This document shows positions 1 to 64,000 of a stretch of 64,000 nt of DNA, one piece after another. A model generated the notes under the pieces. It was not told where the DNA came from and did not search any database. It was given only the letters and a program-made list of their open reading frames with translations. The stretch comes from Tubulanus polymorphus (lineage: Eukaryota; Animalia; Nemertea), in the NCBI RefSeq assembly GCF_964204645.1, contig NC_134031.1, positions 6,138,001-6,202,000 on the forward strand, given 5' to 3'. Numbering within the stretch: the stretch's first letter is position 1; the number at the start of each line of letters is the position of its first letter. The translations under genes and the position numbers were made by a program.

Positions 1-3000
1 GATAGCAAAAGCTTCGCTTCCGGTGCCCCGGCGATTGAGGAAGAAGCGCACTGTAGTCTGGCAGACGGACTACCTCTTCGCGATGAACAACCACAGCCTA
101 GTAGCCCAGTGCGTGAAGAAATTACGACGAAATCCGAGCTAGAAGCTGCTGATGACGAACGTCGCGCCGAAGACGTAAAAAACGAGGACGACGATGACAA
201 CAACGTTTACGAAAAAACGACTTCGGAAAAAATGTGGATCGACTCGATCCACGTGTCGGACATATCGGACGACGACGACGACCGAGACGAATCGGTCGAG
301 GTGCATATATCCGATATATCGCTGGAGTATATATCCACCGTCAATAAGCTATCCGCTAATTTAGTGTCGAATCAGTATATGGCGCCGAAACCGGTCGAAC
401 GGTTCTCGACCGGCGCGTACGCGTTGTCTCCGGTGAAATCGTTTTCGTATGTTCCCTCCGCTTACGTCGCGACGGGCGCCGCCACCGCGAATTTGGCGCT
501 GTCCGATATTTCCGATGAGGATGACCGAAGCTCGCGCGGCAAAACGGACGACGTTCGACGACAACCGCCTAAACTCGAGATACACGTGTCGGATATCTCG
601 TCCGACGAAGACGACGAATTCGCCGACGCCGTCGACGATCGCGCGCCGCCGTTTCTGACGCGATGTCCCCCGCCAACGGCGACGATGACGACGTACGATT
701 TCATGTTGGCATCGCGTCCGACGGCGATGAAAACGATTCTCGATTACTCGTTGAATCCGGTCCGCAACGTCTACCCGATGTCGTCGGAGTTCGCTGATTA
801 TCCGAAACACGATTTCAATTCGGCGCCCTCGCGTACGACGATTGCGGGTAGTTGCGATAAACGCGATGCGACGCAGCCGTCTCGCGACTGGTTCGATCCG
901 GTATCGCGAAACGAAGGAAACGGCGGTCGCCGGTGGAATGCTTTGAACGATGAACTTACGAAAGAAGCATCTACTGGCGATACTAGTACGAAATCGGAGC
1001 CTCCGATGACTCATCGAATTAGCAACACGCCCGTTTCCGAATTATCGTTCAACGCTGCTGCCGATGATGGGGATGACGAAGATGATGATGACGGAGACGA
1101 TGATGTTAATTGCGAAGAAGCTCAACTCAACGGTGATCATGATGAGAAAACCGTTGATCGTTGCGTAATTCCTCAATCCGATCTCGGCAGTGTATCGAAT
1201 GAATGTGCTCTCGCGAAAGATGCCCCGATAGAACGCGATCAAAATCGAAAATATTCCGTGACGACATCTGATTCGGAACAAATTACCACCAGCGAGCAAT
1301 TTCAGCGTGAACTGGATCGTTCTTCATCTGAATCCGACGCGCGTAATGAAAATCATCTACAGCGCGAACGACTCGCGTATTTCAACCTGTGTCGGACGGA
1401 TTCGCCGCGCGCGAAAATCCCGTCGAAACCGAAAAGCGCCGTCGATAAAGCGTTGTTCAACAGTAATCCGTTGTTGCCGTTCGTATCGAAGAACTCAACT
1501 GAGGACGAGTCGAAACGCGAGGATAAGGATAAAGTCGCGCGGCCGCCCGATCCGATCGACGCGCATCAGAATCTTCGCCACTACGAAGGATTGGGCAGCG
1601 TCAATTCGCCCGTTCATCCGTCGTCGTCGTCCGAACGCCCGGAGGACGGCGTACGGTTACCGCCTACCCGTTACATGTACGACGACTACGACATTCGCGT
1701 GTCGTTCATGTGCCTCGTTTGCGACGCCGAATTCTCGAATTCGTGGGATTTGAGCAATCACCAATTGGACGTTCACGAGACCGTCGACTGTCGCCATATA
1801 CAGATGGAGAAAGACTGCTCGACGGACCTGCCGCGTTTCATCGTGCCGAAACCGTCGGTGGACGGCGCGTTGGACGGTTTGGGAAAGTTCGTGCCCGAGA
1901 ATCCGTATTCGGAATGTATAAACTGTACGAAGTGTCGCGAGACGTTCGGAGACATCGGCGAATTGCGCGCGCACATCATGTACTGCGCGACCGGCACGCG
2001 ATCGAAGTCAAACTCGCGCGTGTACTATCGCAAGGGCTACAAACGCGGCCGCAACAAACTCGGTCGCCGCACGCGACAGGGTCCGAAAATGAAACGACAA
2101 ACGCCGGTGAAACCGACGGAGAACGCGAGCGCCGTCGCAGCCGGTCGGCGACGTGGACATTTAGCCGTTTTACGCCTCGGCGATTCGGACGGTGCTAAAC
2201 GCGATTTATCCGAGGTGACCGATGGAACGGGGAAACGTCGGCGTCGTCGTCGCAATCAGAACCCCGATCAGATTCCGTACAATCCGAAACGGCACGTGCG
2301 CCGCCGCGAACTGCGACAGTGCATCGATATGCAGACGTGTTGGGGCTGCGGTAAGAAATTCTCGAATCTACCGCTGCTCGAACGGCACAGCAAAACGTGC
2401 GACCAACGCGACGTGATTCAAAAGCGTAAACTGTCACGTCAAGACGAGAACACGCCGTCGATTTCGACTGTCGCGCAGCAGCAGGCAGAGGAGGTTGAGG
2501 AAACGAAGCCCGACGCGGCGGCGACGACGAAAAAACCCGGCGTACCGTTGCGGTGTCCGTATTGTAGTAAAAACTTCATATATCGCACGCATTTACGAAC
2601 GCATTTACGAGAGATATGTTCCGTGAAACAGAACTTGTTGACGAAAGACCTTCTCACGGCCGATCACGTCGCCACCGAGAATCAATTGTTGAAGAGCGTT
2701 TTCAATAACGAGTACGCCGGCGACGTGCAGACGGTCGAGTTGAGCGCTGAGGACGCCGTCAAACAGGCGGAGAAAATCATGAAACAAGGTCGTCAAAAAC
2801 GTCTGCTATGGATGCGCGGCAATCGACGAAAAGAGACGAATAAACGTAATAAAAGTTGGGCGTCGTTGAAACATTTGAAATCGGCGCGTAAAACGTCGGC
2901 GAAAATCAACAACGCGACGACTACTTCGCTTCTGTCAGCGCCGCCGTCGAAGTTCGGCACCGACGACGTCTACGCGTATCCCGAGTCGACGGACGGCGAA

Positions 3001-4989
3001 GATACAATGCCGAGTTTGGTTCACGCGACGGATACGTCGCCTACGAACTCGCTACAAAAACGCACGCCTCGACGCAAGACTCTCATCGACAACGATCCGT
3101 ATTACATGAAAACGTTCGACCAACGCGACGACAAGGAGAAAGCGGTCGCCGGGGGCAATAAACGCCGTCGCAAACGCACGTTCAAAGCGTTGATGCTCGA
3201 AAACGGAATGTACCCGGAAATCGACGGGCGTAAATGCCGCGCCGTGAACAACAAACGAAAACGCATCGATTCGCTACCTGATCCGGAGAACGTCGAAAGC
3301 GTTCTTGCGCCGGAAAAGGTCCCGGCTCCGGCACCTGCGAAAGCGGCAAAAAAAGACGCTCAAAAGCAACGAGAGCCCGTCGAAGACGATCCGGAGAAAT
3401 ATGTGTACAGTTTACCGGACGAGAACGGCGTGGTTAAAATCTGGAAACGACGCGGGCCGAAACCTAAATGGCTGAAAGCTATGGAGACCAAAAATCCGAA
3501 CGATAAGGTCGTCGAACCTAATGACGATACGATAAAAGCTGCGACCGAGAACGGAGCGGTCATCGAAAGTTCCGAAACGGGCGATATCCTTCAACCATTG
3601 AAGGTAAAGAACAAAAGACGTTCGAAAGCGAAAGCGAAAATAAAAGAGGATAGTGAGAACGCACCCGAATCGATATCGATTACCGGTGCCCCACCGCTGA
3701 AACCGATTTCTCTGAAATTGAAGATGAAACGAAATTCGAAAAGTAAGTGGAGCAGATCGAACCCCGAAGAAGGAACTGTCGATAAGTCGAAAGTTGAGGA
3801 TGTCGAACAAGACAACGGCTGCCGTGCCGATGACGTCGGTATCAATTCGGAATCCGCGGAACCTTCGAATCAACCGAAGAAGAAGTTGAAGTTGAAGATC
3901 ACGAAGAATTCCGACGGGAAAATGTCGGCATCGGTGGACGAGGCTAGTAAATTAGGCGATGCCGAATCGGAAGAGGCGCAAGTCAAGAAAAAACGTAAAC
4001 GGTTCAGTCAAAAGAATTTGGATGGTTTGTACGATTTGATGAAAGAACTGGAGGTGCGAGATATCGAGAAGAGGCAGGAAGAAATCGTATTTCGCAGCGA
4101 TAAAGCGGGACCGAAACCGGTTTGGATGAGGAAATTGATCAGTATCTATACGTCGCGTAAGTCGTCTGGCGATAGCGAACCGAATCCGGCGGACAAAACC
4201 GATCTGGCGAAGTTGATCGAAACGCATTGCGCCGAAAAAGAAGGCCGTCAAAGAGCGGCGAAAAAGCGCAAACCGAAAATGAAAGGCAGTTTGAAAGATA
4301 TCGCCAACGCGGCTCAGTGCGCCGTAACTGACCAGGCTAATCGTTTGAAGGAGCTCGCCGAGGCGGCTAAAGTCGCCGTCACGGAGAAAATACAAATGCA
4401 CCAAAGCGAACCCATTTTACTGGAAGCGGATATCGATCTTAGCGCGCCGTTAGTAATCGACTTTCAAGGTGCCGCGGACGTCGACATAAAAGTACCGCGG
4501 AAAAAACGCGTTCCTAAAAAGTTTCTGGACAACGTCGATGACGCGGTTCCGACCGTTGATTCGTCGTCGGCCGTCTGCAATAACGCGCCCGCGAAAACGC
4601 GTAAAAAACCCGGTCCGAAAACGGGATGTAAGCGAGGAGTTAAGAAAGCGGTCGACGGCGTCGCGAACGCGAACACGGCGGAAAACGCGAACGCCGTCCA
4701 TAATCCTCCCGCGAAAATACGACGCAAACCGGGCCCGAAACCCGGTTACAAACGTAAGAAGAAAACGTTGGAGAACGTTCCGTCGGTAGCCGACGTGATA
4801 CCGTCGGAGAGCGGACAATTCGTCGTCATCAAGGACATCTACGATTTCGACGACGAATCGTGTCTTCGAAGTTCTGTGCCGTCCGTCGGAGTTGTTAGTC
4901 CGTTGAAATTAAAAACGTCGTTGTTAAACCCCTCCGGCGGTATCGGCGCCGACGAATGCGAATTGATTATCAACGAATCGAAATCGTAA
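1..4989 (+). CDS. 3' terminal giant exon of a PRDM2/RIZ-like C2H2/C2HC zinc-finger protein (5'-partial; frame open from base 1)
   Basis: Frame 1 is open from position 1 to TAA at 4987-4989. Fingers FMCLVCDAEF..HQLDVH, INCTKCRETFGDIGELRAHIMYCATG and CPYCSKNFIY..HLREIC occur in the order and style I recall for the C-terminal fingers of vertebrate PRDM2 (FVCSVC..HQRDLH, IRCTKCGKGVDNMPELHKHILACAS, CPYCNREFTY..HAAFSC). Basic NLS-like and KPGPKP stretches are present. No PR/SET domain lies inside the window, so orthology is tentative. Confidence 0.8.
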   Translation, partial: DSKSFASGAPAIEEEAHCSLADGLPLRDEQPQPSSPVREEITTKSELEAADDERRAEDVKNEDDDDNNVYEKTTSEKMWIDSIHVSDISDDDDDRDESVEVHISDISLEYISTVNKLSANLVSNQYMAPKPVERFSTGAYALSPVKSFSYVPSAYVATGAATANLALSDISDEDDRSSRGKTDDVRRQPPKLEIHVSDISSDEDDEFADAVDDRAPPFLTRCPPPTATMTTYDFMLASRPTAMKTILDYSLNPVRNVYPMSSEFADYPKHDFNSAPSRTTIAGSCDKRDATQPSRDWFDPVSRNEGNGGRRWNALNDELTKEASTGDTSTKSEPPMTHRISNTPVSELSFNAAADDGDDEDDDDGDDDVNCEEAQLNGDHDEKTVDRCVIPQSDLGSVSNECALAKDAPIERDQNRKYSVTTSDSEQITTSEQFQRELDRSSSESDARNENHLQRERLAYFNLCRTDSPRAKIPSKPKSAVDKALFNSNPLLPFVSKNSTEDESKREDKDKVARPPDPIDAHQNLRHYEGLGSVNSPVHPSSSSERPEDGVRLPPTRYMYDDYDIRVSFMCLVCDAEFSNSWDLSNHQLDVHETVDCRHIQMEKDCSTDLPRFIVPKPSVDGALDGLGKFVPENPYSECINCTKCRETFGDIGELRAHIMYCATGTRSKSNSRVYYRKGYKRGRNKLGRRTRQGPKMKRQTPVKPTENASAVAAGRRRGHLAVLRLGDSDGAKRDLSEVTDGTGKRRRRRRNQNPDQIPYNPKRHVRRRELRQCIDMQTCWGCGKKFSNLPLLERHSKTCDQRDVIQKRKLSRQDENTPSISTVAQQQAEEVEETKPDAAATTKKPGVPLRCPYCSKNFIYRTHLRTHLREICSVKQNLLTKDLLTADHVATENQLLKSVFNNEYAGDVQTVELSAEDAVKQAEKIMKQGRQKRLLWMRGNRRKETNKRNKSWASLKHLKSARKTSAKINNATTTSLLSAPPSKFGTDDVYAYPESTDGEDTMPSLVHATDTSPTNSLQKRTPRRKTLIDNDPYYMKTFDQRDDKEKAVAGGNKRRRKRTFKALMLENGMYPEIDGRKCRAVNNKRKRIDSLPDPENVESVLAPEKVPAPAPAKAAKKDAQKQREPVEDDPEKYVYSLPDENGVVKIWKRRGPKPKWLKAMETKNPNDKVVEPNDDTIKAATENGAVIESSETGDILQPLKVKNKRRSKAKAKIKEDSENAPESISITGAPPLKPISLKLKMKRNSKSKWSRSNPEEGTVDKSKVEDVEQDNGCRADDVGINSESAEPSNQPKKKLKLKITKNSDGKMSASVDEASKLGDAESEEAQVKKKRKRFSQKNLDGLYDLMKELEVRDIEKRQEEIVFRSDKAGPKPVWMRKLISIYTSRKSSGDSEPNPADKTDLAKLIETHCAEKEGRQRAAKKRKPKMKGSLKDIANAAQCAVTDQANRLKELAEAAKVAVTEKIQMHQSEPILLEADIDLSAPLVIDFQGAADVDIKVPRKKRVPKKFLDNVDDAVPTVDSSSAVCNNAPAKTRKKPGPKTGCKRGVKKAVDGVANANTAENANAVHNPPAKIRRKPGPKPGYKRKKKTLENVPSVADVIPSESGQFVVIKDIYDFDDESCLRSSVPSVGVVSPLKLKTSLLNPSGGIGADECELIINESKS

Positions 4990-17800: not shown

Positions 17801-20800
17801 GTGCCTAATTTAGAGCGGGCATTCACATGAAAACCACTCACTTGATACTAAACAGTGTTTTAACAAAGCGAAGTGAGTCAGTTGCAATTCACACGCAATA
17901 ATTTGATCCGTACTAGAATTTGGCTCAGGCCTGGTCTGGAGGCACAGGTCTGTTTGGCACCCATGTTTGAATCTGGCCTGGTCTGAAGGCAAGGGTCTGT
18001 TTGGCACCCATGTGAATGGCTGTTCCGGGCAAAATACGCTGGTGTGAACGCGACTATACATGATAGGAAATCCAATCAGGTCGGCACATGGCCCCTAAGT
18101 CAAAATCCAACAGTGAGGTTTTTCACTCGCTATGCGCTATCCGCATTATTTGTTGTGGGTTAGAATTAGACTTGATGAGGGAAATACTGGAAAATCACCG
18201 TGCGCATAACTGATTCCTGGTGTTGACGTATGGATATCATATCTACGTAACCAGTAATTTTATCTAATGGTAGTTCAGCTTATAGCTACAGGGCCACTTC
18301 ATTTAACCTATTGGTACATAGTCATTTAACCTATTGGTACATGGTCATTTAACCCATTGGTACATGGTCATTTAAACTATTGGTACATGGAGAATGGAGC
18401 TTGCACCGAGATAAAAATAAATACCATAAATACCATCACGTAGGTGTCAATTGGCAGCCCAGAACCAACCCTTCACACACTGACCTTCCAAGTACCGTGA
18501 AGTCTTGTGGGTCATTTAATGAGGTTACTAAGTATTGTCAAGTCTTGTGGGTCATTTTATGAAGTAACTTAAGTATGAAGTTTGTAGTTCTAATTAATGG
18601 GGGTGAAAATTTCTGTGGACCTTCGCAAAGGAGGAACACAGGTAAAGCCTTGCCACTAACAAATTGGGGATGGGTGCAGGCATCAGATTAGTTATCCCCT
18701 GCATGAGTAACACTTCACTAGCAGGCTTTAGATCCAGGTGGAGATCAGGGGCCAGTTGCTCTAAAGTTGGTTAGAATTAAACAGTGGATTTAGTTGACAA
18801 AGTGACAATTGAAATTTCATTGTTACGATGGCATTTTTCCATCGATTATCTTTCACAAACTTTTGAGCGACTGCCCCCCCGCCCGAGGGCTGGTTCTTTA
18901 AAACATATTTAGCTCAGGCAAATAATAAGTAGTGTATTTGCACTGTTTCTTTTGACAGCTTTCCAGAATTTCCAATGTCGTTTTTTTTACAGAAATTGCC
19001 CCTCTTACACTTCTTTGCGACAAAAAATCATGCCCTTTTCGTAAAGAAACCGCCTTTGGGTAAATGGGGCGTTCAAAATTTTGAGGGTTTTACGAAAGTC
19101 TCGTAAGACCCCCTGGATCTACCGCCTGTTGTTTACTAGAATACGAGTTTGAAAAAAGAAATAATCGGATAGAACTTACCTCTCAGTATTCTCTCTTCCG
19201 TACATCGTAAGAAATCCCATACACGGACGGTTCCATCGTCGGAACACGACGCAAATTTAGAATCGGATGGACAGAAACTGCGAAATAAATTGCCATCGAA
19301 AACTCAAAAACACTATCGAATAAACAATCGGAATATTTCATTACATCTATTTATTTCATTTTCGTCGAGAACCTATAGATACAGCTCATCGCCCGAAAGC
19401 GTACGTTTTATATTTTATTTTCAATTCCTTTAGCTCTGGTCGCGGTATATATAAACTGAAATAGCACGGACTTGGTGCTGCCTGAAAGGACTCAGCTAAA
19501 GGACTAGAGCGCCGTTCACACACAGCGCGATCAAAACTAGCGCCAAGGCAGATATGAATGGCTTCAACGTTTACAGTTCATTCTAAATACAGTAGAACTC
19601 ACTTGATCCGGATACCTAGACTGCACCCAGATTTCTCTGAATTTAGTGAAATCTGTTTTCAGATAATCGTTGATGCGGATCCAGGTAAAATGGACCAAAC
19701 ATCCCATCCAAATTAGATGATAACCCGAATTATTGTGAGTTTTACTGTATTATGAAATTGTGAACGCCAGACCTGTCCTAAAGAAACGAGCGCGACCATA
19801 GCTATTATCATAATCATTTCTAATTCGATTTACGATGCGCGAGCTGTACGAATAGGTTCGAGGGTCTTTAATAAGGGCCAATAAATGTCGGTTCTCAATT
19901 CATCCGAAAAAGCTCCTCTCTAAAACAATCCAAAACTGAATCCACCACATGTATCCGACTTCAACCGATTCAAATAAAAACATAATACAGTCAAACCCTC
20001 TTAATCCAGATCAGTATAAGGTCCTATAACGAGGGTGCCAATGATAATTGATATTATACAATGCTGATATTATTACCCATAGCCTATATCTATTTGTTCC
20101 CTAGGAAGGAAAGTGACATACAAGCTGTTAATCAGTATAGTACCAGTTAGCCTATAACATATCCAACTAAAATGATACATTTTTGGAAAATGAACCTCAA
20201 GGGCCATTGATTCACTAAAAGCTAGCACAGGGCTGCCAACCGCTGAAAAGTGCTATCGGTAACAAATTGAATTTTTTCATTTCATTGAAATATGAAAGAA
20301 AATGTTCAAATTAATCAATAATCATTAAGACCCTCTCGGTAACATCTTTCATATTTCTGTATGCATCGAACAAATCGAATCAGTATTCCGCATTATAGAA
20401 TACTAACAAATACTGAAAATCGGGAAGTTAGCTAGCAATTACCCGAGGCAGGGACAAATATAATGGTAATTTAGTTTTACTACCCCAAAATCAAATTCAT
20501 AACTTTTTTGCCATTAATTCCTCTAGGGAGGAAAGGCCAAATGAAACCTAGCCCAAACCGAATTAAGCGCGTTTGACTGTACAAGCACGAACAATTCCAA
20601 ACCAACTTATCAGTCCTATCTATCAAATGCACAACAAGCCAAAATCATTTTTGTGGGGATTCATCTGTTTATTGGCTCGAAAATTCATCGTACAAATCAG
20701 TGTATGAAAAATCAAGATTATCAGATGAATCAAATACTCTATACGAACCCCCGCCCTAAAATTTATTAACCCACCTGACAACAAAATCATTAATATATAT

Positions 20801-22230
20801 ATATTCAATGACGAAATTTCAACATCCTGAAAAGATCATTTGATAATACCAACCCAGTAATTTATTGTCCCTTCCCATTCAAAACAAAAAAAAAAAAAAC
20901 ATAATATCTCAGGGTCGAGAAAGCCTCAAATCGCATGGAGTGAAAAACTGAAATAAGAAAGTCCTTTGTTAAACCTGACGATTAATGGAACTCCTTAAAA
21001 ACTGGCAGAACCACTGTCACTGAAAACCGCTTCAGAAATTCAGGGGGTCAATTTGAGGGGTCCCACAGAATATCTTATTCAAATATTCTTTTTCTGACTA
21101 GTTATAGGGTCCATTGAAATGTTGGATGGTACATCCCCGTACGAGCACATTGGGCTAGTACCCGGTCCTCTGTTTTGTACATGATGGCAACGAGATATAG
21201 CCCGTAGAAGCCATGATTACACATATGGCTTGGCCTCGGTCAAACTTGACCTGATCAGACCTGAGACAAATTTGTCCTGCGCCTAATAACAGAGCACACG
21301 TAATATCACTTGTTACTGAAATGCTAGGACATGATGACCGCTAATAGTGGGCCCCGTGCCAAAAACTCTCGTGTGTGCGATTGCAGTTTTCTGCCCGACA
21401 TCTGTTTAAGTATGTATACTACTTTTTTTGTTTCTTTTATGCTTTCACCCCCCCATATCTTGATGAGAGCAAAAGGAAATTCAATACAGGTATGTACTTT
21501 TAAACAGCTAGTTGTGCTATTGATATATATATATGCACAACTGGCTGTTTGTGTTGCGTGGGAGTTTTCAATATTGGATATTGACGACAAAATTGGCACC
21601 GAATCAAAAAAATATCTCTATGAAATGCAGCAAACAATGAAACTAGTAAGTAACTAAACCTCAGGCATGGAGGACAATTGAACAAGCAACACTCAAGTCG
21701 GTTCAACCATTGAACTAAGAAAACCTAAAACAAATCTTAATTGAAAGGCAAGGTAACAGACATCTCATATACCGGTGCATAGTTCATCCTTTGAAGATGA
21801 CCATAGTTTCAACTCGGCTGATTGCCCATATATCTCATATAAATATATAGATCAGAATTACCGACTTTTTTTGGGAAGAAATGAAAGTGGATCAGAGTGC
21901 TCGGAATTGGAATTTACAGACTTGACCTGGACCGACGTTAATGGCTACAAAGTTTCTCCCGACGGACTGAAAAAGTAGTTTGAACCGAGGATGAGCCTGC
22001 TAAACGTAGACGGATGAGAACTCCTCAAAGATGACACAGAGAACAGAGAGAATCCTTTCTTCGCGTTAAATCCTTCCGAAAACTACAGACAAAATGGCTA
22101 GTCGATCCCCCGGAACTCCCATCCCGTCAATATTTATTCAGCCCTCGATACCCGAGAAACTTTTATTCGTTTATTTCTTTTTTCACTAACTCAATAATCA
22201 ATAATATCATAAAACATCCCCCGACAATAG

Positions 22231-22269
<39 letters not shown>

Positions 22270-24938
22270 AACAGGTCATAATTGATGAATAATAATAATA
22301 ACAGTAAATATAGCCTGATAAAAATAATGAGAAAGCAGATTTATAAATACGTTTATTATTCGAGAAATCTGTTCTCATCAGGCAAACCGGTAATGAAACA
22401 TGTCGTAATGCGCAACGCCGCCATTTATCTTTATTGCGAAATGACTGAAAATGACGGCAACAAAAAACGAAATAGTAATAGTAGTAATATGCGTATTATA
22501 ATATCCCACCTTAGATCGCGTACTGCCTCTTTATGAGCCTGATACATCTTAACATTATTCATATTAGACTGCCAGTATTTAATGAACCCGGCGTGGTCGG
22601 CGGTCAACATCCACGTGTCGTTGTGACTCCAGATCATCGTCCTTACCGGAGCGTCATGCGCCTGAAATACGCAATCAAAACCATACATTATAAATACGGG
22701 GTCGCTAAAGATCAGTCATTCCTGGATGAATGGAGTTTTCGAGGAGAAAATTTCAAATTTCAAGGAAGCATCTGCACCATTTCCATATTCCAATTAAAGT
22801 TCACTCGTTCAATCAAAACCATACATGATATGGGACATTTCGCTAAACGCAGTCATCCTCCCTTGGCTTAGCTTCTGGTTGGTCCTGCCACACTAGCCTG
22901 AGTGCGCAACTACATGCACAGCGTAGATGAAGTCATTATAAGCCAATCAGAAATCCTGTTTTATTTTAGCTCGGGACAGGTTTTACCATTTTAGTTTATC
23001 CATGAAATTTGCCTCTTGCCTCTTCGCGTTTATACAATGGGCAATCTGATCGGCAATCTGACCGAGTCTAGCGATGCCGTCAGGTTCGAATCCCTGCCGT
23101 GGGAGGATGAAATGGGGTATGATACTGTATCATAGTCAAACGGATTCAACCATGGGGTCCATACTATGTATTAGCTCCTTTCAGAATTTGAGAAAATATC
23201 AAAAATCAAGGACAGGGTCCGTACAGATCAGTCATTCCTAGATATAAGGATTTGTGTTTTCAAGGAGTTTTAAAGGAGAAAATGTTTGCGAAGCATTCGC
23301 ATCACTTCCGTATCCCAATCACAATAGACTCTTCCTCAAGGTTTACATCATGGTGATATCAAGTTTTCTTTTTAATTATTACGATCTATAATTCTTCGAT
23401 ACAATCTATTATAGTTACTCCTACCGGATAACAATTTACCTGTAAAATCGTCTCAAAATTAAATGTAAGGCCACTCCACAATGTGAATTCACCACTCGAT
23501 GCACCAGTCACAAGACGCCGACCTTCAGGAGTCCACTGAAAATTATGAACATTTTCGGCATTTCATTGTATTTCGAAAAATCGAAGAATCAAATTTTTCA
23601 ACTAAACGACTGAATTATCATGCTTACGCATAAAGCAAAAATCGGGCATCTCAGTTTGTTAGTCGAAGTCCGGATGAATTTAGACGTGACGGCATTCATG
23701 TAGTTATCGGTCATACCGAATGGTGGCACCACCTGCGCAAATGAAACGAATAGTTTTATCATCCGTTCAACAATCTCTCCATAACTAGTGCCCAGAGCGA
23801 ACTGATCTCAATCGAGCGCCTAAGTCGAGCTGACAGGAGAGTCAGCCGTATGAAAAGGTTTAGGGTAAAAAAAAAAATTGAAAAGATTACTCAACAACTT
23901 ACATCTGCCTGATAAAGGTAGTCCGGCATCACAGACCTCTGATCTCTATAGTCTCTTTGCCATATACGATTCTACAATTCAAACAGAGATATGATATACA
24001 GATATAAATCCTTGATAACGCCACTGTTGGGACCAATGAAAAACATGGCGTTAAAACGAATTTGGCGTCATAAACAATGGTATTTCCGTTAATTTTCGAG
24101 TTGAATTGGGTGAATTCGTTCTCTAAGAATTTTGGCATGCAATGAAGGATGGTGTTAAAACGGACTATGACTGTAATTAAAGTCCAACCCGTTGCATCCG
24201 GATTTTTATCCAACAATATCCAATTCCGACATTTTTGTTATTTCAGTTTCACTAAAGATCGGTCATTCCTGGTTATAGTTATAAGCAGTTTTTCAAGGAG
24301 AAAACTTCAAATTTCAAGGAAGTGTTCACGTCCCGATTACTGTAGACACCTCCTGAATCGGTACTGTTTATCTCAGTTATCTCGGATGGTTTAGTGAGCA
24401 ATTTTTATCCTACTAACTTTACTTAACTCGATTTCTAAAATTTGCTTACCGCCTAAATGGGTAAAATATATCTTGATCCCAACAGTACCAATTTAGCAGT
24501 AGTTTATTAATACAGTACAACTACAAACATTTCAAACATTTCTCGAAATTGAAGGAGTTTTGGGCTTTTTTCTCGGATCGACTCTAATACCCTTCATTAC
24601 AGGCGTTTTGGGACGAATAAAAGAAGTCCTACCTCTAAATGCCGTAAAATCGGTGCGTTATAATCGACGGTTTTCCGGTAAACCGCTTTACGCATTTGTT
24701 TGCCGTTAAAAGCCGCGTTGACGTTTCCGCTGAAGCCCTGCTGTTGTTTGAAAGGGATGAATCGTTGGTGACTTCCGGCGGGACTGTGTTGGTGAAATCG
24801 CGGCATGTGGAAGAACCGCGGCCCTCCTCCGCCCGCCGGGCCTCCGCCGTGGTGATGCGGCGGTTGGTACGGGGCGTGAAATCGAGGCCCGCCCCCGGCC
24901 GGAGGCATCTGCTGCATCGGAATATCGACTAATGCCAT
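8894..24938 (-). CDS. WDR33: pre-mRNA 3'-end processing protein WDR33 (CPSF/mPSF subunit), 16 coding exons, 967 aa
   Basis: Exons (minus): 24938-24633, 23971-23903, 23732-23628, 23535-23440, 22661-22510, 19277-19180, 17427-17301, 16498-16344, 15689-15611, 14053-13943, 13179-13085, 12995-12927, 11870-11616, 11060-11047, 10562-10223, 9726-8894. All introns are GT-AG with compatible phases; total 2904 nt. Peptides [55 protein letters not shown] and [19 protein letters not shown] are diagnostic of WDR33. Confidence 0.97.
12688..12828 (+). mobile_element. MITE family A, internally deleted copy
   Basis: Same termini and 3' half as copy 1. Confidence 0.7.
14494..15558 (-). mobile_element. hAT-like non-autonomous DNA transposon with a nested insertion
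   Basis: TIR CAGACCTGCCAAC/GTTGGCAGGTCTG with near-identical flanks TCTTGT/TCTCGT. Remnant peptide [16 protein letters not shown] resembles a hAT transposase N-terminus. Confidence 0.65.
15941..16216 (+). mobile_element. MITE family A, diverged copy
   Basis: Shares the internal AGATGGCAGCACCTGTC and the terminal TGAAAGGG. Confidence 0.75.
18300..18390. repeat. 23-bp minisatellite x4
   Basis: Unit CATTTAACCTATTGGTACATGGT. Confidence 0.9.
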
Positions 24939-46987: not shown

Positions 46988-49900
46988 ATGGAGCACAAGG
47001 CTGAAGAAAACTGCGGAGATTCCGACGGCAAATGCAATAGATCCTCCGACGATGAATTGGTTCATTTTTATGTTCAGACACGTTTAAGCGTCAAAACGTG
47101 GTTTACCGATTTACTCGCCGAATCATGTCTTGACGTGACATCATTCTTGAAACAATTACTACAAGCTTATATAGAGATTAAGCGACGCAGGTATGCTATG
47201 ACCCAGGTTATGGTGTCGAATTGGCGCTCTTCTGAGGATCTTTCAATTTGAAGTATAATAGCCAGGGGGCAGTAGTTGCTCAGAAGTTGGTTAGAGTTAA
47301 CCCGTGGATAGTTGTAAGTGACAATTAAAAGTTCATTGTTACTATGTTATCTTTAACGAACCTTTGAGCAACTGGCTCCAGAAATCCTGATTTATTCGAT
47401 TTAACCAAACCCTAAGGATAAGCAGCGCATGGCGAAATATTTTCTGGACTTACTAAGCTTCTCAAACACAAGCGGCTGTCGCAAGTTATTAAACTGCTCT
47501 GAATATTTGGTTTTCGCCTCACATGCTGCGTGTATCACTCTTAGATCAATATTTTGGCCAATATTTCAATATGAAAAACTTATTCATTTTACAGGAATAT
47601 GACAAAAGAAGTGCTAAGCTTTTTCAGACCCTATTGACTATTGAGCCTAAAGGTCCCAGTTTCACAAAGATGGAATTAACTCCTAAATTGATTTGACATT
47701 AACTGAATTAATGAAGAAATTGACTCTTTTTAAGTTTTTGTGAAACTGAACCGAGGTGCTCAACATGCAGATTATAATTTTAGTTAAAGGAAATTGAACA
47801 GTGACAGCCATACTTCATTCAGTATTATCATTCTGGTGTACTAATCACTACTTCCTTGTGTACAATAACATATGAGCATGAGTAGACCTATTTCGCGCCC
47901 TGGAGTCATCTATAAATTCCTGGTTGGAGAAAATGCAACAAGAATAGTTGTCTTGCCCAGGGACAGTACAATACCACGCAGCCCAAAACCTAGTCAGTAA
48001 CCTGAGGTGGACCTAGAGGGCTAATTTTGAAGAATTTGTCAAAGCCGCCCAAATGGTACTTTGATGTCCAAAAAAGCAATATGAAGCATACCCTGCACTG
48101 GAATGCACCAATTATCTTTGTTGACAAAATGAAATGGGCACTAAAAAATATCTGATGGACTTGTACAATCTTGCAAGTCCCCCAGGGTCTGCCCCTGGTA
48201 ACCAGGCTGTGGTTTAGTTACACGATCGGATATATTACAGCCTATCTGATATGAAAGCTTGCCACCAACGATTAGGTAGGCTAACTAACAACTCAAAACC
48301 TGGCATCTCAGAGTATGAATCATTTGACCACATGGAACATCATCTATTAGCTGTATGTATTTTTCAGAAATCGACTAAAGAATGATGTTGCGGTGAACAC
48401 TGAAAGAAGTGGTAACGTCATGTTGCCTCTGAGTCAAGATGAGTGTTCGAAGAATAACCATCGCATCTCGTCATCGACAGAAGTTGGTCGCGAAATCTAT
48501 AAATTGAAACGATTAACGAGACCGACCGTAGGTGTGCGAGGTAGATCTGTGAAACCAGTAGTCGAGGATCACGAACTGTCGGTTGAAACTATGAAGCGTG
48601 CAAACAATGAAATGCATAAAAAATCAACTCGGTTGAAAGAAAAAAAGTTAAATCGATTTCATGAAATACATGCAATGAAGAATGTCAATGACGTTTGCAA
48701 TGGTGATGCCGATGATTTTAGATTAAAGGAAAAGGTATTTTCTGGTGATGGTGGTGATCATAACCAAGATGGCGATATTGTTAATGCTGTAAATGGTAGC
48801 TATGATGAGTCTACTAGTAATACCAGCAACGTTGAGGTTCAGAAACAAACTCAAACTCCGGTTAGATTCGAGGGTAGGAAGTTGAGAAGTCGTAATCGCG
48901 AAACTACTGCCGGAAACTGTAAAAAGCCTTCTGAAAATGGCGAAAATTTAGAGTCAGATAAATGTATAGATTGCGGAGTCGAGGTCGTGCAATCAAATGC
49001 AGAACACGAAAATGTACAAAATCTCGATGAATCGACGGAATATCGATGTTCATCATGCGCGAAATCTGCGTTATCGACGCGCGATACCGACCACGGTCAG
49101 TGTTCGTATTGCGATTTCAAAGCGAAGTGGAAAAAAGATGTTCGAAAACACGTGAACGTCGTTCACCCGGAACGAGCCGCTGCTGCTGCGAAAAAACCGC
49201 GCGCGAAACTCGTTCACAAATGCGGAATTTGCGATGAAGAATATCCGACGAAGGCCGTGTTGAACAAGCATCGAATACTACGAAATCACCACGAACAGCG
49301 GCACGTTTGCGATCAGTGCGGCAAACTGTACGCGACGATGCGATATCTGCGCGATCACATATTCGCCGTTCACAACGAGAAGCGGTTGCGATGTCCGTAC
49401 GACGGGTGCGACGTGCGTTTCGCCAAAAAGCCGGCGATGCGGCAACACGTACGTCGCGTGCATTTACGCGTCAAGAAAATCGTCTGCCCGTACGACGGTT
49501 GCGCTTCGCGTTTCAATCAGAACAAAGACCTGAAGCAGCACGTCATCGTGCACCACACGAAAGAGCGTAATTACGCGTGCGAGCACCCGAACTGCGGGAA
49601 GTCGTTCAAAAATCAATACCACCTGACCGTTCATCGTCGCATTCACAGCGACGAGAAGCCGTTGAAGTGTCCGTACTGCGAGTACCGCGGCCGGCAGCGG
49701 AACTCGCTGAACGTACATTTGCGCAAGCACCAGAAAGAAGGCATGGACGTCGCGATACCTCGTTTCGAGGGCACCGGCCGTCGGAAAAAAGGATCGGAAA
49801 TAGAAACGCGTGCGCGTTCGAACGCGGGAGAAAAATCGTCGGACGCAATTTCCGATGGAGCGATAATTCCGCTGAAACCTGTGATTTCATTAGCAGACGG

Positions 49901-50354
49901 CAGTTCGGCTAAACACGATCAGTTGTATCAGCCGACTGAACCGGCTGATAATCGAAACAATCTATTCTTAGAGAATATTCGCAGTAATTTACCCACGTCG
50001 TCTCTATCTGGTACAGTTTTCAACAACGAAATAGAAACTTCGTTGTACAACGTGGGTAAGATGGTCCTCGGCAGCAGCGACAACGGTCTGGCGCCATTAA
50101 TCGTCGGCGCGGATAAGTCGGACGATAATAGGATATTGATGAATTCAGAATCCTATCTACCGGTGGTGCCATCCCAATGCGCCGTCGAGGTAACAACCTG
50201 CGGTATGAATCACAGCAACACGTACGATCCATTACGACATCTAGATGCCGAGCCTGTTTGCATGCCGCAGGTTATCATACAGAATCTCAGCAGTGTTCCT
50301 GTCGGTTACGCCGATATTAGTGAATCTTATACAACTGAATACCACCAAATGTAA
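46988..50354 (+). CDS. C2H2 zinc-finger protein, ZFP91/ZNF653/ZNF692-like, 2 coding exons, 729 aa
   Basis: Exons 46988-47190 (AG|GTATGC) and 48368-50354 (TTTTCAG|) join in frame (2190 nt). Seven tandem C2H2 fingers; the last pair HRRIHSDEKPLKCPYCEYRGRQRNSLNVHLRKH resembles the ZFP91 family (..TGEKPLQCEICG..RQ.ASLNWHMKKH). AATAAA at 50413-50418. Confidence 0.85.
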
Positions 50355-61498: not shown

Positions 61499-64000
61499 CT
61501 ACTCTATACCAGTCCGGATCATGTTGGCAAGCGCATCCAACAGTTTAGGATTCTCTAAAACCTCCGGAATTTTCGCATATTCCAGGAACAATTCAATCCT
61601 CCTACGATCCGTCTGCATGTTGAACATTAGAAATTCACCCGAACGCTGCCAAGCCGGGGGTCGTCTCGTCCGCGGTCTTGGCACAGGTCGCTCCTCCGAA
61701 CTAGGACTTGGCTCGTCAACATCCGGTGAAGTTGAAACAGAGGGTGAACTAGCTGGCACGCTATCCACCGACAAAGGGCTCAACGGAGGAGTCTCCACGT
61801 CAACCAGAACTGGATGCTCCACAGAATCGCTTGTTCCCTCAGCTCCCGGTGATTCCGGAACGGAGGCCATTTCCGATCGCACAATCTCCTCAGAAATTGG
61901 AGCTGGAGAAACACTCTCAATGGAACTTCGAGATAACACGGTGTCCGCACCCGCAATCCCAGGCTCAACGACGGGAGGTTCCTCCGCAGTTTCCACTTCG
62001 CGTGAGACAAGTACCCAGTCTTCCTCGTCGGACCCATCGTCCGCTACTTCAGCAACTATTTCCTCTGGCATATTAGTATTACCAACAGCGACTTTCTCCG
62101 AAGTAACATGCTCCGGGTTTGCTTCCTTTACTCGGAATGATTCCTCACTGTCACGCAAAGGAGTAGCCAAAGGTAATAACTTGTTCCTATGCAGAATCCT
62201 CCTACCCCCATCTTCAATTCTTTTTACCTCGTAAACAGGTACATCTCCAGTTACCTTGCTTTCTACGATATAAGGCACCGATTCCCAGCGGTCAGCTAAT
62301 TTATGTCGTTCCCTAAATCCTTCACGCTTGACCAACACCATATCACCGGGCGTTAATTCTGCACTCTTAGCTCTCCTGTCATATAACTCTTTCCGTCTAT
62401 CCCCTTGCCTAGACAAGTGATCTGCTGCCAAATTCCACGCCACTTCCAATTGATTTTCCATCTGCTTCACATACTCTGTTGTCGACGTCACACTTTCTTC
62501 ATTACCCCAACCAAATTTCTTATCAACTGACAGTCTGGGTCTTCTTCCGAACATAAGGTAGAATGGCTCAAAGCCTGTCGACTCGTGGGGCGTACAATTA
62601 TACGCATACACCAATGCATTAATATGCCTCCGCCAGTTTCTCTTTTCCTCGGGCGGCAAACTACCCAGTAGTCGAATCAACGTACCATTAAACCGTTCCA
62701 CAGCACCATTGCCCGCAGGGTGATACGGTGTAGTTCGGGTTTTCCTCATACCGGTCAACTCGCATAACTCCTTGATCACACGACTTTCGAAGGCAGGCCC
62801 CTGATCCGAATGAAGTTGAACAGGCGCTCCGAATTTCAGCACCACTTCGTTGAATAAACACTTAGCCACCGTTCTAGCCGTCTCATTTTTAGTCGGAATA
62901 GCCATCGCAAACTTAGTGAAATGATCGGTCATAACAAGCACCTTTTCGAAACCTTGACTCGGCTCCAATGTTAAAAAATCAATGCACAGTAACTCCATAG
63001 GGTACGATGTCTCAATGCTGACCAGCGGGGCAACTTGTGTAGGCGTCGAAGCCTTCAGCAGCACACAGCGCTTACAACTCTTCAAATATTCCTCGACATC
63101 GGATTTCATTCCGGGCCAATAACATCTTCGTCTCAATAACGCCAACGTTTTGTCACGGCCGGGATGCCCCAACCGATCGTGCAAACAGTCAAGCATCTCC
63201 GCCCTCTCCGAATAGGGCAACCAAACTTTCAGCTCTGACACTCTATTTTCAACAACTCTGCGGTACAAAACATCATCCAGAAGTTCCAGCGACTTAAAAA
63301 CCCGACAGATCCCGTACTCCCATGGCTTAGCTGGCCGGAATCTTGTCTTGGTCCTTAAACAAGAAACAACGCGTCGAATAGTCGGGTCTCGCTCCTGCAA
63401 TTTCCGCATGTCTACCTCTGCTACCCCTCCGGCTTTCGTCACAGGGACTGACGGACTTACGGTACAAATTGCTGCAAAGACGTCAGCAGTGATCCGATTT
63501 AATGGACTTCGACTCAGCGCGTCTGCATCCCGCATATTAGCGCCACTATGGTATTCGAGTTCCAAATCGTACACTGATAAAGCCTGTAGCCAGCGATGTC
63601 CCGTGGCATCCAGTTTCGCAGATTTCAACACATAAGACATGGGGTTCGAATCAGTATGGACACAATATTTGTTACCATACAAGTAATCGTGGAACTTTTC
63701 CGTCGCCGCCCATTTCAGAGCCAGGAACTCAAGCTTGTGCGCAGGATACTTCTTCTCTGAAGCATTCAATCCTCTACTTGCGTAAGCGATTACCTTCTTT
63801 ACTCCCTTTCCATCTGTTTGGTATAGGATCGCACCTAATCCATCATGAGCTGCATCCGTATGAAGCTCGAAGGGTCTATTAAAGTCTGCGAACCCTAAGA
63901 TGGGGCTTGACGTCAACATCTCCTTCAACCTCGTGAATGCGTTTTCTTCATCCTGTCCCCACTGTACCTCAATCCTCCGTTCCGCTGTCTTACGTTTCCC
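61499..64000 (-). CDS. pol: Gypsy Pol polyprotein (RT connection/RNase H, integrase HHCC, DDE core, acidic/Pro-rich tail), 5'-partial
   Basis: Frame is open to the window edge. LHTDA..GLGAILYQ, IAYASR, KLEFLALKWA, HDRLGHPG..CKRC, IDF..TDHFTK, LHSDQG and TTPYHPAGNGAVERFN. Order RH then IN is Gypsy-type. Confidence 0.95.
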   Translation of the reverse strand, partial: GKRKTAERRIEVQWGQDEENAFTRLKEMLTSSPILGFADFNRPFELHTDAAHDGLGAILYQTDGKGVKKVIAYASRGLNASEKKYPAHKLEFLALKWAATEKFHDYLYGNKYCVHTDSNPMSYVLKSAKLDATGHRWLQALSVYDLELEYHSGANMRDADALSRSPLNRITADVFAAICTVSPSVPVTKAGGVAEVDMRKLQERDPTIRRVVSCLRTKTRFRPAKPWEYGICRVFKSLELLDDVLYRRVVENRVSELKVWLPYSERAEMLDCLHDRLGHPGRDKTLALLRRRCYWPGMKSDVEEYLKSCKRCVLLKASTPTQVAPLVSIETSYPMELLCIDFLTLEPSQGFEKVLVMTDHFTKFAMAIPTKNETARTVAKCLFNEVVLKFGAPVQLHSDQGPAFESRVIKELCELTGMRKTRTTPYHPAGNGAVERFNGTLIRLLGSLPPEEKRNWRRHINALVYAYNCTPHESTGFEPFYLMFGRRPRLSVDKKFGWGNEESVTSTTEYVKQMENQLEVAWNLAADHLSRQGDRRKELYDRRAKSAELTPGDMVLVKREGFRERHKLADRWESVPYIVESKVTGDVPVYEVKRIEDGGRRILHRNKLLPLATPLRDSEESFRVKEANPEHVTSEKVAVGNTNMPEEIVAEVADDGSDEEDWVLVSREVETAEEPPVVEPGIAGADTVLSRSSIESVSPAPISEEIVRSEMASVPESPGAEGTSDSVEHPVLVDVETPPLSPLSVDSVPASSPSVSTSPDVDEPSPSSEERPVPRPRTRRPPAWQRSGEFLMFNMQTDRRRIELFLEYAKIPEVLENPKLLDALANMIRTGIE

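Follow-up and report, generated by a model that had tools for sequence, protein, structure and literature searches.

The minus strand of the window, the 64-kb stretch of Tubulanus polymorphus DNA analyzed here, carries the WDR33 gene. One of its coding exons was placed at 22510-22661 (minus strand) by the contig joints 22660/23439 and 19277/22510 in X3, the sole RNA-like run for this species, for which the data are at the contig level. The product of this exon reads AHDAPVRT...KEAVRDL and is followed by AG, the first two bases of a split codon; residues 159-207 of human WDR33 align with it over 49/50 residues (E 7e-26). The first-pass annotation had numbered the exon as the sixth, a label that holds by homology with the human numbering, although the exon is the fifth coding exon in the spliced contig. 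Downstream, the same contig defines a GT..AG intron of 3232 nt (19278-22509, minus strand) and the next constitutive exon (19180-19277, minus strand), which starts with (S). The 5' splice site of the intron, AAG/GTGGGA (-3 to +6; 22504-22512, minus strand), departs from the consensus at +4 and +6 without being extreme. It is the only one of the six WDR33 donors here to have G at both +3 and +4, and the G at +4 leaves the read-through frame free of TGA. The donor had also been described as weak; GTGGGA is indeed present and non-consensus at those two positions, whereas its weakness is a judgment made from the sequence.

On the basis of the unspliced frame, translation beyond this donor would add 26 residues and a TAA stop (22431-22511, minus strand, with the stop at 22433-22431). 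The extension contains a hydrophobic core of 21 residues (22440-22502, minus strand), carries two Arg, and has a Kyte-Doolittle 19-residue maximum of 2.15 located two residues from the C-terminus. The length of 268 aa given earlier for the predicted read-through protein agrees with the exon-length sum and is obtained by arithmetic alone (306 + 69 + 105 + 96 + 152 = 728 nt, or 242 codons plus 2 nt, and then the 26 residues). The stop was correctly reported to overlap an AATAAA, its TAA lying within 22435-22430, and it ends what is, by hydropathy, an in-frame hydrophobic extension such as a WDR33v2-type isoform requires. When random frames of the WDR33 introns were used for comparison, 21% reached at least 25 aa and 6% of those matched the hydropathy of the tail, with length and hydropathy combined found in 1.2%; stops inside AATAAA made up 3%. 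The accompanying caution about low complexity was well placed, as part of the hydrophobic tail consists of TTA/CTA-type repeats.

Five sense AATAAA hexamers, all on the minus strand, cluster at the start of the intron. The first (22430-22435) holds the read-through stop, the second (22352-22357) is followed by a U-rich stretch, and the third to fifth lie together at 22133-22175 (22170-22175, 22162-22167, and 22133-22138); the four said to follow the stop were therefore all recovered, beginning at 22352, 22170, 22162, and 22133 and less than 300 nt past it. In the first 400-410 nt of the intron, these five compare with 0.30-0.34 expected from dinucleotide shuffles, and five were reached in 0/2000 shuffles. 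Over the whole intron, the sense strand contains 10 AATAAA versus 2.1-2.2 expected and the antisense strand 5 versus 6.0. The intron start is the densest AATAAA cluster on either strand of the window, which overall is without enrichment (114 versus 108.7 expected), and the first 400 nt of each of the other WDR33 introns (∼1.5 kb pooled) together contain one sense AATAAA. A second group of three sense hexamers (20861, 20762, and 20668) occupies 20668-20866 on the minus strand; that at 20668 lies 13 nt upstream of the end of an RNA contig at 20655 and is followed by the GU-rich sequence TGATTTTGGCTTGTTGTG. An (ATT)n/(AAT)n microsatellite (22226-22301), identified in the genome-copy search, separates hexamer groups, and 22218-22313 was masked as repeat when the RNA contigs were placed. 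Comparison of the intron with known RNA families gave a single match, to mir-19, which was rejected as sub-threshold (32 bits versus 50); it falls on a 16-bp hairpin that encloses a polymorphic (AT)n.

The X3 contigs were then compared with this layout. A single unbroken contig spans the 22510/19277 junction at a depth of 242, and the spliced junction is the only one in the X3 contigs despite the non-consensus +4 and +6 positions of the donor. Within the contigs of this one run, coverage is zero at 22236-22509 and none runs from the exon into the intron; the exon by itself accounts exactly for the depth of the 22432-22627 bin. Read-through beyond ∼22431 is rare at best in the X3 sample. RNA ends do not register in contigs, and short dead-end branches are probably trimmed away during assembly, so that transcripts ending at the first signal would leave no trace in X3. 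The third to fifth AATAAA sit within an RNA contig that continues 1.1 kb further, and these three are thus not an obligatory end.

That contig belongs to an abundant single-copy transcript located inside the intron (20655-22217), the X3 contigs of which (21071-22217 at a depth of 171 and 20655-21039 at a depth of 93) are not joined to WDR33 exons. Its region is single-copy save for a 120-nt fragment at 70-78% identity, and its RNA derives from the non-reference allele only. For run X3, we rejected an assignment of this nested transcript to WDR33, be it as the 3' portion of a read-through or as an alternative terminal exon, because the WDR33 contig is unbroken from exon 2 to the exon past the intron and 22236-22509 is uncovered.

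Recognition of AAUAAA falls to the WDR33 subunit, the short, membrane-bound V2 isoform of which was not characterized until 2024, in human cells, and was presented as a case of one gene giving rise to two unrelated proteins. Human V2 arises when intron 6 is retained and the transcript is polyadenylated within it; this intron is spliced inefficiently and encodes a hydrophobic transmembrane tail of 118 aa. One poly(A) signal lies in the coding sequence, 12 nt before the stop, five others lie downstream of the stop, and the isoform regulates STING (PMC11019558, PMC11445923, PMC11331416). The human short-isoform precedent given in the first-pass annotation is thus real and is found at the equivalent intron, as the exon alignment to human residues places it; like human intron 6 (residue about 208), the window intron follows an exon ending ...QAHKEA(I/V)R... 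The locus resembles human/rat WDR33v2 (NET14) in the gene, in the intron position after the second WD repeat, in a non-consensus donor compatible with in-frame read-through to a hydrophobic C-terminus, and in the several AAUAAA-type signals around the stop, one of them at or just before it. It differs in that the tail is 118 aa in human but 26 aa here, with no sequence similarity between the two, and in that exon 7 and intron 7 provide further end points for human V2. Poly(A) site use is known for the human gene, whereas the sites here are candidates read from sequence, and ER localization and STING/WIPI2 binding are human features set against a locus known from DNA. A search of this genome for the STING ligand-binding domain (PF15009) gave no match, a result that says nothing on absence.

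To compare the intron with its orthologs, introns were taken from ORF calls on genomic contigs of other invertebrates. The non-consensus donor, the open hydrophobic frame, and the sense AATAAA at or after the stop proved to be kept elsewhere, which lends the earlier proposal partial support. The GTGGG donor occurs unchanged in eight orthologous loci, which represent five or more distant invertebrate lineages. The tails of the relatives span 39-85 aa, lengths to be read in light of the fact that ORF calling as a discovery route favors long tails; in the orthologous introns with the shared layout, they measure 62-85 aa with a hydropathy of 2.3-2.6. In the 600 nt past the stop, the relatives have in total 27 sense AATAAA versus 7.3 expected, compared with 5 versus 6.8 on the antisense strand. 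The read-through frames of three species groups are open and alignable with in-frame indels (omega 0.34-0.69, exon dS 0.75-2.2), and for two of these groups the intron alignment extends no further than an AATAAA site. Between L010 and L012, the alignable DNA within 3-4 kb is confined to the exon and the first 310 nt of the intron, and the similarity ends ∼20 nt past a perfectly conserved AATAAA block. In L014, L016, and L017, the AATAAA cluster and the U-rich downstream element GCTTTGTTATTTTTT are conserved but the intervening sequence is not, and L018 and L019 share an open frame and recurrent hexamers. L004 repeats the AA-TAA-A arrangement found here, and in L019 the stop is overlapped by an ATTAAA. 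L015, P0023, and P0048 either stop at once or have no AATAAA close by, the latter two being 'R-stop' ORFs. One locus, L020, was left out because its intron position differs. When the DNA of the window intron was aligned to that of the relatives, the exons alone aligned (76-79%). Among the protein tails returned by the search, vertebrate-type matches part at the same codon, REA/RF.... Logan contigs of the relatives were discarded as RNA evidence, all of them being genomic and carrying intron sequence ahead of the exon.

The immunoglobulin M heavy chain provides the familiar example of a composite-terminal-exon switch, which yields a membrane or a secreted form. As there, a 5' splice site here would compete with an intronic poly(A) site further downstream, and the outcome would set the C-terminus; the direction is reversed, in that the intronic site would add a membrane segment in WDR33 and removes one in IgM. 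IgM is a switch, whereas the window intron offers no evidence of regulated switching. Closer in function are two 3'-processing genes: CstF-77, with its Drosophila counterpart su(f), has a conserved intronic poly(A) site together with a weak 5' splice site (PMC3708835), and PCF11 has an intronic poly(A) signal (PMC6458999). The window locus shares with them a 3'-end-processing gene, a promoter-proximal intronic poly(A) site (a candidate one here), and a non-consensus donor, a layout that would let processing activity reduce the full-length mRNA of its own gene; the conservation across species known for those genes is seen for WDR33 in other invertebrate lineages. The feedback is demonstrated for those genes and is one that we infer for WDR33; the WDR33 papers PMC11445923 and PMC11331416 make no mention of autoregulation. 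The intronic isoforms of CstF-77 have no apparent protein product, whereas the window intron encodes a membrane-type tail.

The architecture of this intron start, its statistical oddity, its placement at the human intron 6 position, and the fact that other invertebrates conserve such an architecture are direct observations. We tentatively interpret the intron start as a V2-like intronic polyadenylation module, a reading that, judged from sequence, falls a little short of an even chance. The first ∼400 nt of the intron would serve as a composite terminal exon of the human WDR33v2 type. When the AAG/GTGGGA donor is not used in time, translation would run on through 26 further codons to make a hydrophobic C-terminus resembling a tail anchor, with its stop embedded in AATAAA, and cleavage and polyadenylation would take place at that hexamer or at one of the four that follow within 300 nt. 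The predicted 268-aa product would comprise the N-terminal region, the first two WD repeats, and the tail. If the module is used in this species, the tail may insert into a membrane, and use of the site might track WDR33/CPSF activity and so limit full-length WDR33.

It is also possible, with somewhat lower probability, that this is an ordinary, efficiently spliced intron whose features are a decayed remnant or a T-rich/microsatellite coincidence without present function here. The X3 contigs, in which the junction is always spliced and none enters from the exon, fit such an intron, as do the loci without the features (L015 and the 'R-stop' ORFs P0023 and P0048), the lack of AATAAA enrichment over the window as a whole, and a tail that is much shorter than that of every relative and partly of TTA/CTA low complexity. 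The AATAAA enrichment is nevertheless strong, local, sense-specific, and against the compositional trend; the read-through stop falls inside one of the hexamers; and the same intron makes human V2 and holds conserved ORF-plus-PAS modules in several invertebrates. The clipping of short dead-end branches during assembly, which would hide use of the first signal, further tempers the RNA argument for ordinary splicing.

A distinctly unlikely explanation is that the hexamer cluster is the promoter or 5' region of the nested transcript at 20655-22217, or its 3' end on the other strand. Since that transcript starts or ends within ∼300 nt of the donor, the AT-rich hexamers could be those of its promoter, and a TATAAA is present at 22345-22340 (minus strand). 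A separate unit would also suit the single-copy locus covered at depths of 93-171 beside the bare interval 22236-22509, the canonical AATAAA and GU-rich element shortly ahead of the contig end (20655), and the RNA from the non-reference allele only, which suggests cis control of its own. However, three of the five hexamers would then fall inside the transcript rather than upstream of it, the contigs fix neither its strand nor its ends, and the hydrophobic frame, the stop in AATAAA, the conserved donor, and the parallels in other species would go unexplained. An origin of the hexamer region as a transposon relic or retrocopy was dismissed, because no part of it other than the (ATT)n microsatellite has further copies in the genome.

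A broader form of the V2-like reading, which we consider doubtful at this stage, is that of an old bilaterian module retained in several protostomes including this one, with a fast-evolving tail, that combines an anchored isoform with a self-limiting sensor of poly(A) recognition. If the conserved frame and poly(A) sites hold in distant invertebrates, the isoform would be far older than the interferon system to which it has been linked. Its ancestral role, whether at the membrane, in feedback to the processing machinery, or in both, would become testable, and the module would explain why a suboptimal, stop-free donor (GTGGG, GTAT, or GTTT rather than GTAAG or GTGAG) is found at this one intron. 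For the T. polymorphus genome, the analysis singles out a 400-nt interval as the place for candidate 3' ends.

The WDR33 gene model, taken from a spliced contig of the RNA-like run X3, lies on the minus strand and comprises a first coding exon (ATG at 24938, to 24633) followed by exons at 23971–23903, 23732–23628, 23535–23440, 22661–22510, and 19277–19180, with GT..AG at every intron. High-copy repeats are present in two of the introns (20080–20471 and 22728–23411), with depths in the hundreds or thousands in all four sequencing runs that cover the stretch, X3 included. The exon preceding the intron of interest (22509–19278, 3232 nt) encodes 50 residues, ends with the first two bases of a split codon, and matches residues 159–207 of human WDR33 (E = 7e-26). 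The first-pass annotation had described here a weak donor, a read-through frame, a stop inside AATAAA, and four further hexamers, all of which were found in place. The donor, AAG/GTGGGA, is the least consensus-like among the six WDR33 donors seen but keeps the consensus at −2, −1, +1, +2, and +5, and on sequence grounds we rate its weakness as moderate and not severe. Past the exon, the frame continues for 26 residues to a TAA stop (22433–22431) within AATAAA (22435–22430), and the other sense hexamers at the intron start are at 22352, 22170, 22162, and 22133. The 268 aa of the read-through form follow from exon-length arithmetic (728 nt, or 242 codons plus 2 nt, and the 26 residues).

This layout was confirmed as real and statistically unusual. 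AATAAA is not enriched in the whole window (114 observed, 108.7 expected); the intron contains 10 on the sense strand compared to 2.1–2.2 expected from dinucleotide shuffles, and 5 on the antisense strand compared to 6.0. In its first 400–410 nt, five sense hexamers were found versus 0.30–0.34 expected, a count reached by 0 of 2000 shuffles, and this cluster is the densest in the window with both strands considered. The sense strand is T-rich (40% T), so its composition disfavors AATAAA, and the other WDR33 introns have a single copy between them in their first 400 nt. Among the frames of WDR33 introns, 21% reach at least 25 aa and 6% of those match the hydropathy of the tail (Kyte-Doolittle 19-residue maximum of 2.15), jointly 1.2%; stops embedded in AATAAA make up 3% of stops. 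Elsewhere, three long ORFs in GC-richer parts of the window, at 109–4989 (plus strand, 1626 aa), 48393–50354 (plus strand, 653 aa), and 61499–63928 (minus strand, 809 aa), may represent mobile elements or large exons.

The human short intronic isoform named in the annotation, WDR33v2 (V2), is real, STING-linked, and derived from the exactly equivalent intron. It arises by retention of intron 6, which is inefficiently spliced out, with polyadenylation sites spread over intron 6, exon 7, and intron 7 and with one poly(A) signal in the coding sequence 12 nt upstream of the stop and five downstream; the protein has a hydrophobic C-terminal tail of 118 aa, in which a transmembrane domain is predicted, is located in the ER, and regulates STING (PMC11019558; PMC11445923; PMC11331416). 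The window intron matches the human one exactly in position and shares its sequence layout, with an in-frame hydrophobic extension, an intronic stop, and poly(A) signals around that stop. PMC11019558, PMC11445923, and PMC11331416 mention no species besides human and rat and make no mention of WDR33 autoregulation, and a STING domain search of the T. polymorphus genome, of a type that cannot show absence, gave no match. For T. polymorphus, self-regulation of WDR33 and a link to STING can only be inferred.

The four runs belong to one study, and their nature was judged from behavior, none being recorded as RNA: X3 has spliced contigs and near-empty introns, and X1, X2, and X4 are DNA-like. In X3, one contig (depth of 242) passes through every WDR33 junction, including 22510/19277. 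The depth of 145.8 in the bin 22432–22627 equals the exon-only expectation (118/196 × 242.1), and that of bin 22236–22431 is 0, at contig level in one sample. No exon-to-intron read-through was present at the level kept by the assembler, again in the contigs of one sample, which drop rare variants. A transcript with its end just past the first hexamer would form a dead-end branch of ∼100 nt, which tip clipping in the assembler would probably remove unless it were abundant. At levels above a few percent, read-through to the second to fifth hexamers would be expected to show, and none appeared in the X3 contigs. These data argue against abundant use of the intronic poly(A) sites in T. polymorphus. 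A non-functional or decayed intron feature is a serious possibility, to which we give minority credence.

The hexamers might instead be elements of the promoter or 5′ region of a nested transcript, as an abundant separate RNA (20655–22217) occurs in the intron with a TATAAA (22345–22340) nearby. Its X3 contigs, at 21071–22217 (depth of 171) and 20655–21039 (depth of 93), are comparable in depth with the WDR33 mRNA (242), and its sequence is single-copy in the genome. The end at 20655 lies 13 nt past a minus-strand AATAAA (20673–20668), with a GU-rich element just beyond, and the opposite end, near 22222, borders an (ATT)n microsatellite; the minus strand seems the likelier one. The WDR33 mRNA contig is unbroken at all junctions, so the nested RNA does not connect to the WDR33 exons. 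X3 carries only its non-reference allele, and X2, DNA from the same sample, carries the reference. The Rfam mir-19 model matched, below threshold (32 bits versus a gathering value of 50), a hairpin formed about a polymorphic (AT)n (21500–21552). Its fold z-score is −3.8, but the stem is only ∼16 bp, and it is probably not a miRNA precursor. Assigning the hexamers to the nested transcript leaves the open frame, the stop inside AATAAA, and the parallels in other species unexplained, and we consider it improbable. A transposon-tail origin is ruled out, since, apart from the (ATT)n microsatellite (22226–22301), no part of the AATAAA region has other copies in the genome.

Orthologous introns bear on a V2-like module. 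With the exon-plus-tail ORF as query, the matches were called ORFs in genomic contigs from many animals, and in each the WDR33 exon continues into intron-encoded residues up to the first in-frame stop; DNA was compared for eleven matching loci, all genomic. Against the window, exons alone align (76–79% identity). The AG/GTGGG donor is common to the window and loci L001, L004, L010/11, L012/13, L014, L016, and L017 (at least five lineages), with read-through tails of 62–85 aa and hydropathy of 2.3–2.6, tail lengths among relatives being biased upward because short ORFs are rarely called. Sense AATAAA occurs on the stop and 14 nt after it in L004, 67 nt past it in L010, 60 nt past it in L012, and as clusters about 280–560 nt past it in L014, L016, and L017 and about 780–1220 nt past it in L001. 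L018 and L019 have GTATCT donors and hydrophobic tails of 39–41 aa; L018 has 14 AATAAA within the first 604 nt of its intron, and L019 has ATTAAA overlapping the stop and AATAAA immediately after. Over the 600 nt past the stop in the ten non-window loci pooled, sense AATAAA numbered 27 versus 7.3 expected and antisense 5 versus 6.8. The pseudoscorpion locus L015 is without these features and the ORFs P0023 and P0048 stop directly after the exon, so the read-through module is not universal. The donor, open hydrophobic frame, and AATAAA recur in several invertebrates, not all, in the comparison that the annotation had proposed as a check. In an arthropod-like genomic contig (L020:1097–1486), WDR33 exons 3–5 are fused, the intron position is shifted a few codons upstream (after ...KMFQ), and the frame likewise continues into it (VHKNKLIKTTLHLWLWKCQLIIKSFY). 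Consensus GTAAG or GTGAG in this phase would put TAA or TGA right after the exon, so a stop-free frame forces sub-optimal +3/+4 bases; this need would explain the donors GTGGG (window and first group), GTAT (L018/L019 group), and GTTT (vertebrate-type matches).

Conservation footprints were compared independently of the locus-finding route. Between L010 and L012 (exon dS of 0.75), the exon and first 310 nt of intron (L010:260–570 versus L012:424–764) are the sole alignable DNA in 3–4 kb, and the block stops about 20 nt past a 40-nt AATAAA-bearing segment that is identical in both loci. Among L014, L016, and L017 (exon dS of 1.0–2.2), the intron start and AATAAA cluster align, most intervening sequence does not, and GCTTTGTTATTTTTT is common 20–28 nt after the last hexamer (intron offsets of about 600–800). 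Metazoan poly(A) sites consist of a hexamer, a cleavage zone, and a U/GU-rich element, the layout that this hexamer and GCTTTGTTATTTTTT show. In all three groups (omega of 0.34–0.69), the read-through frame stays open, and its indels are in-frame and leave the register intact. In our reading, the weakly constrained hydrophobic coding extension and its poly(A) site are under purifying selection in no fewer than two to three independent lineages of invertebrates. The earlier interpretation is partly supported overall: in T. polymorphus, a functional V2-like module at this intron is a tentative reading, somewhat short of an even call, and other invertebrates appear to have the same architecture, in the same intron as human V2, under selection, a finding absent from the papers covered here (PMC11019558; PMC11445923; PMC11331416).
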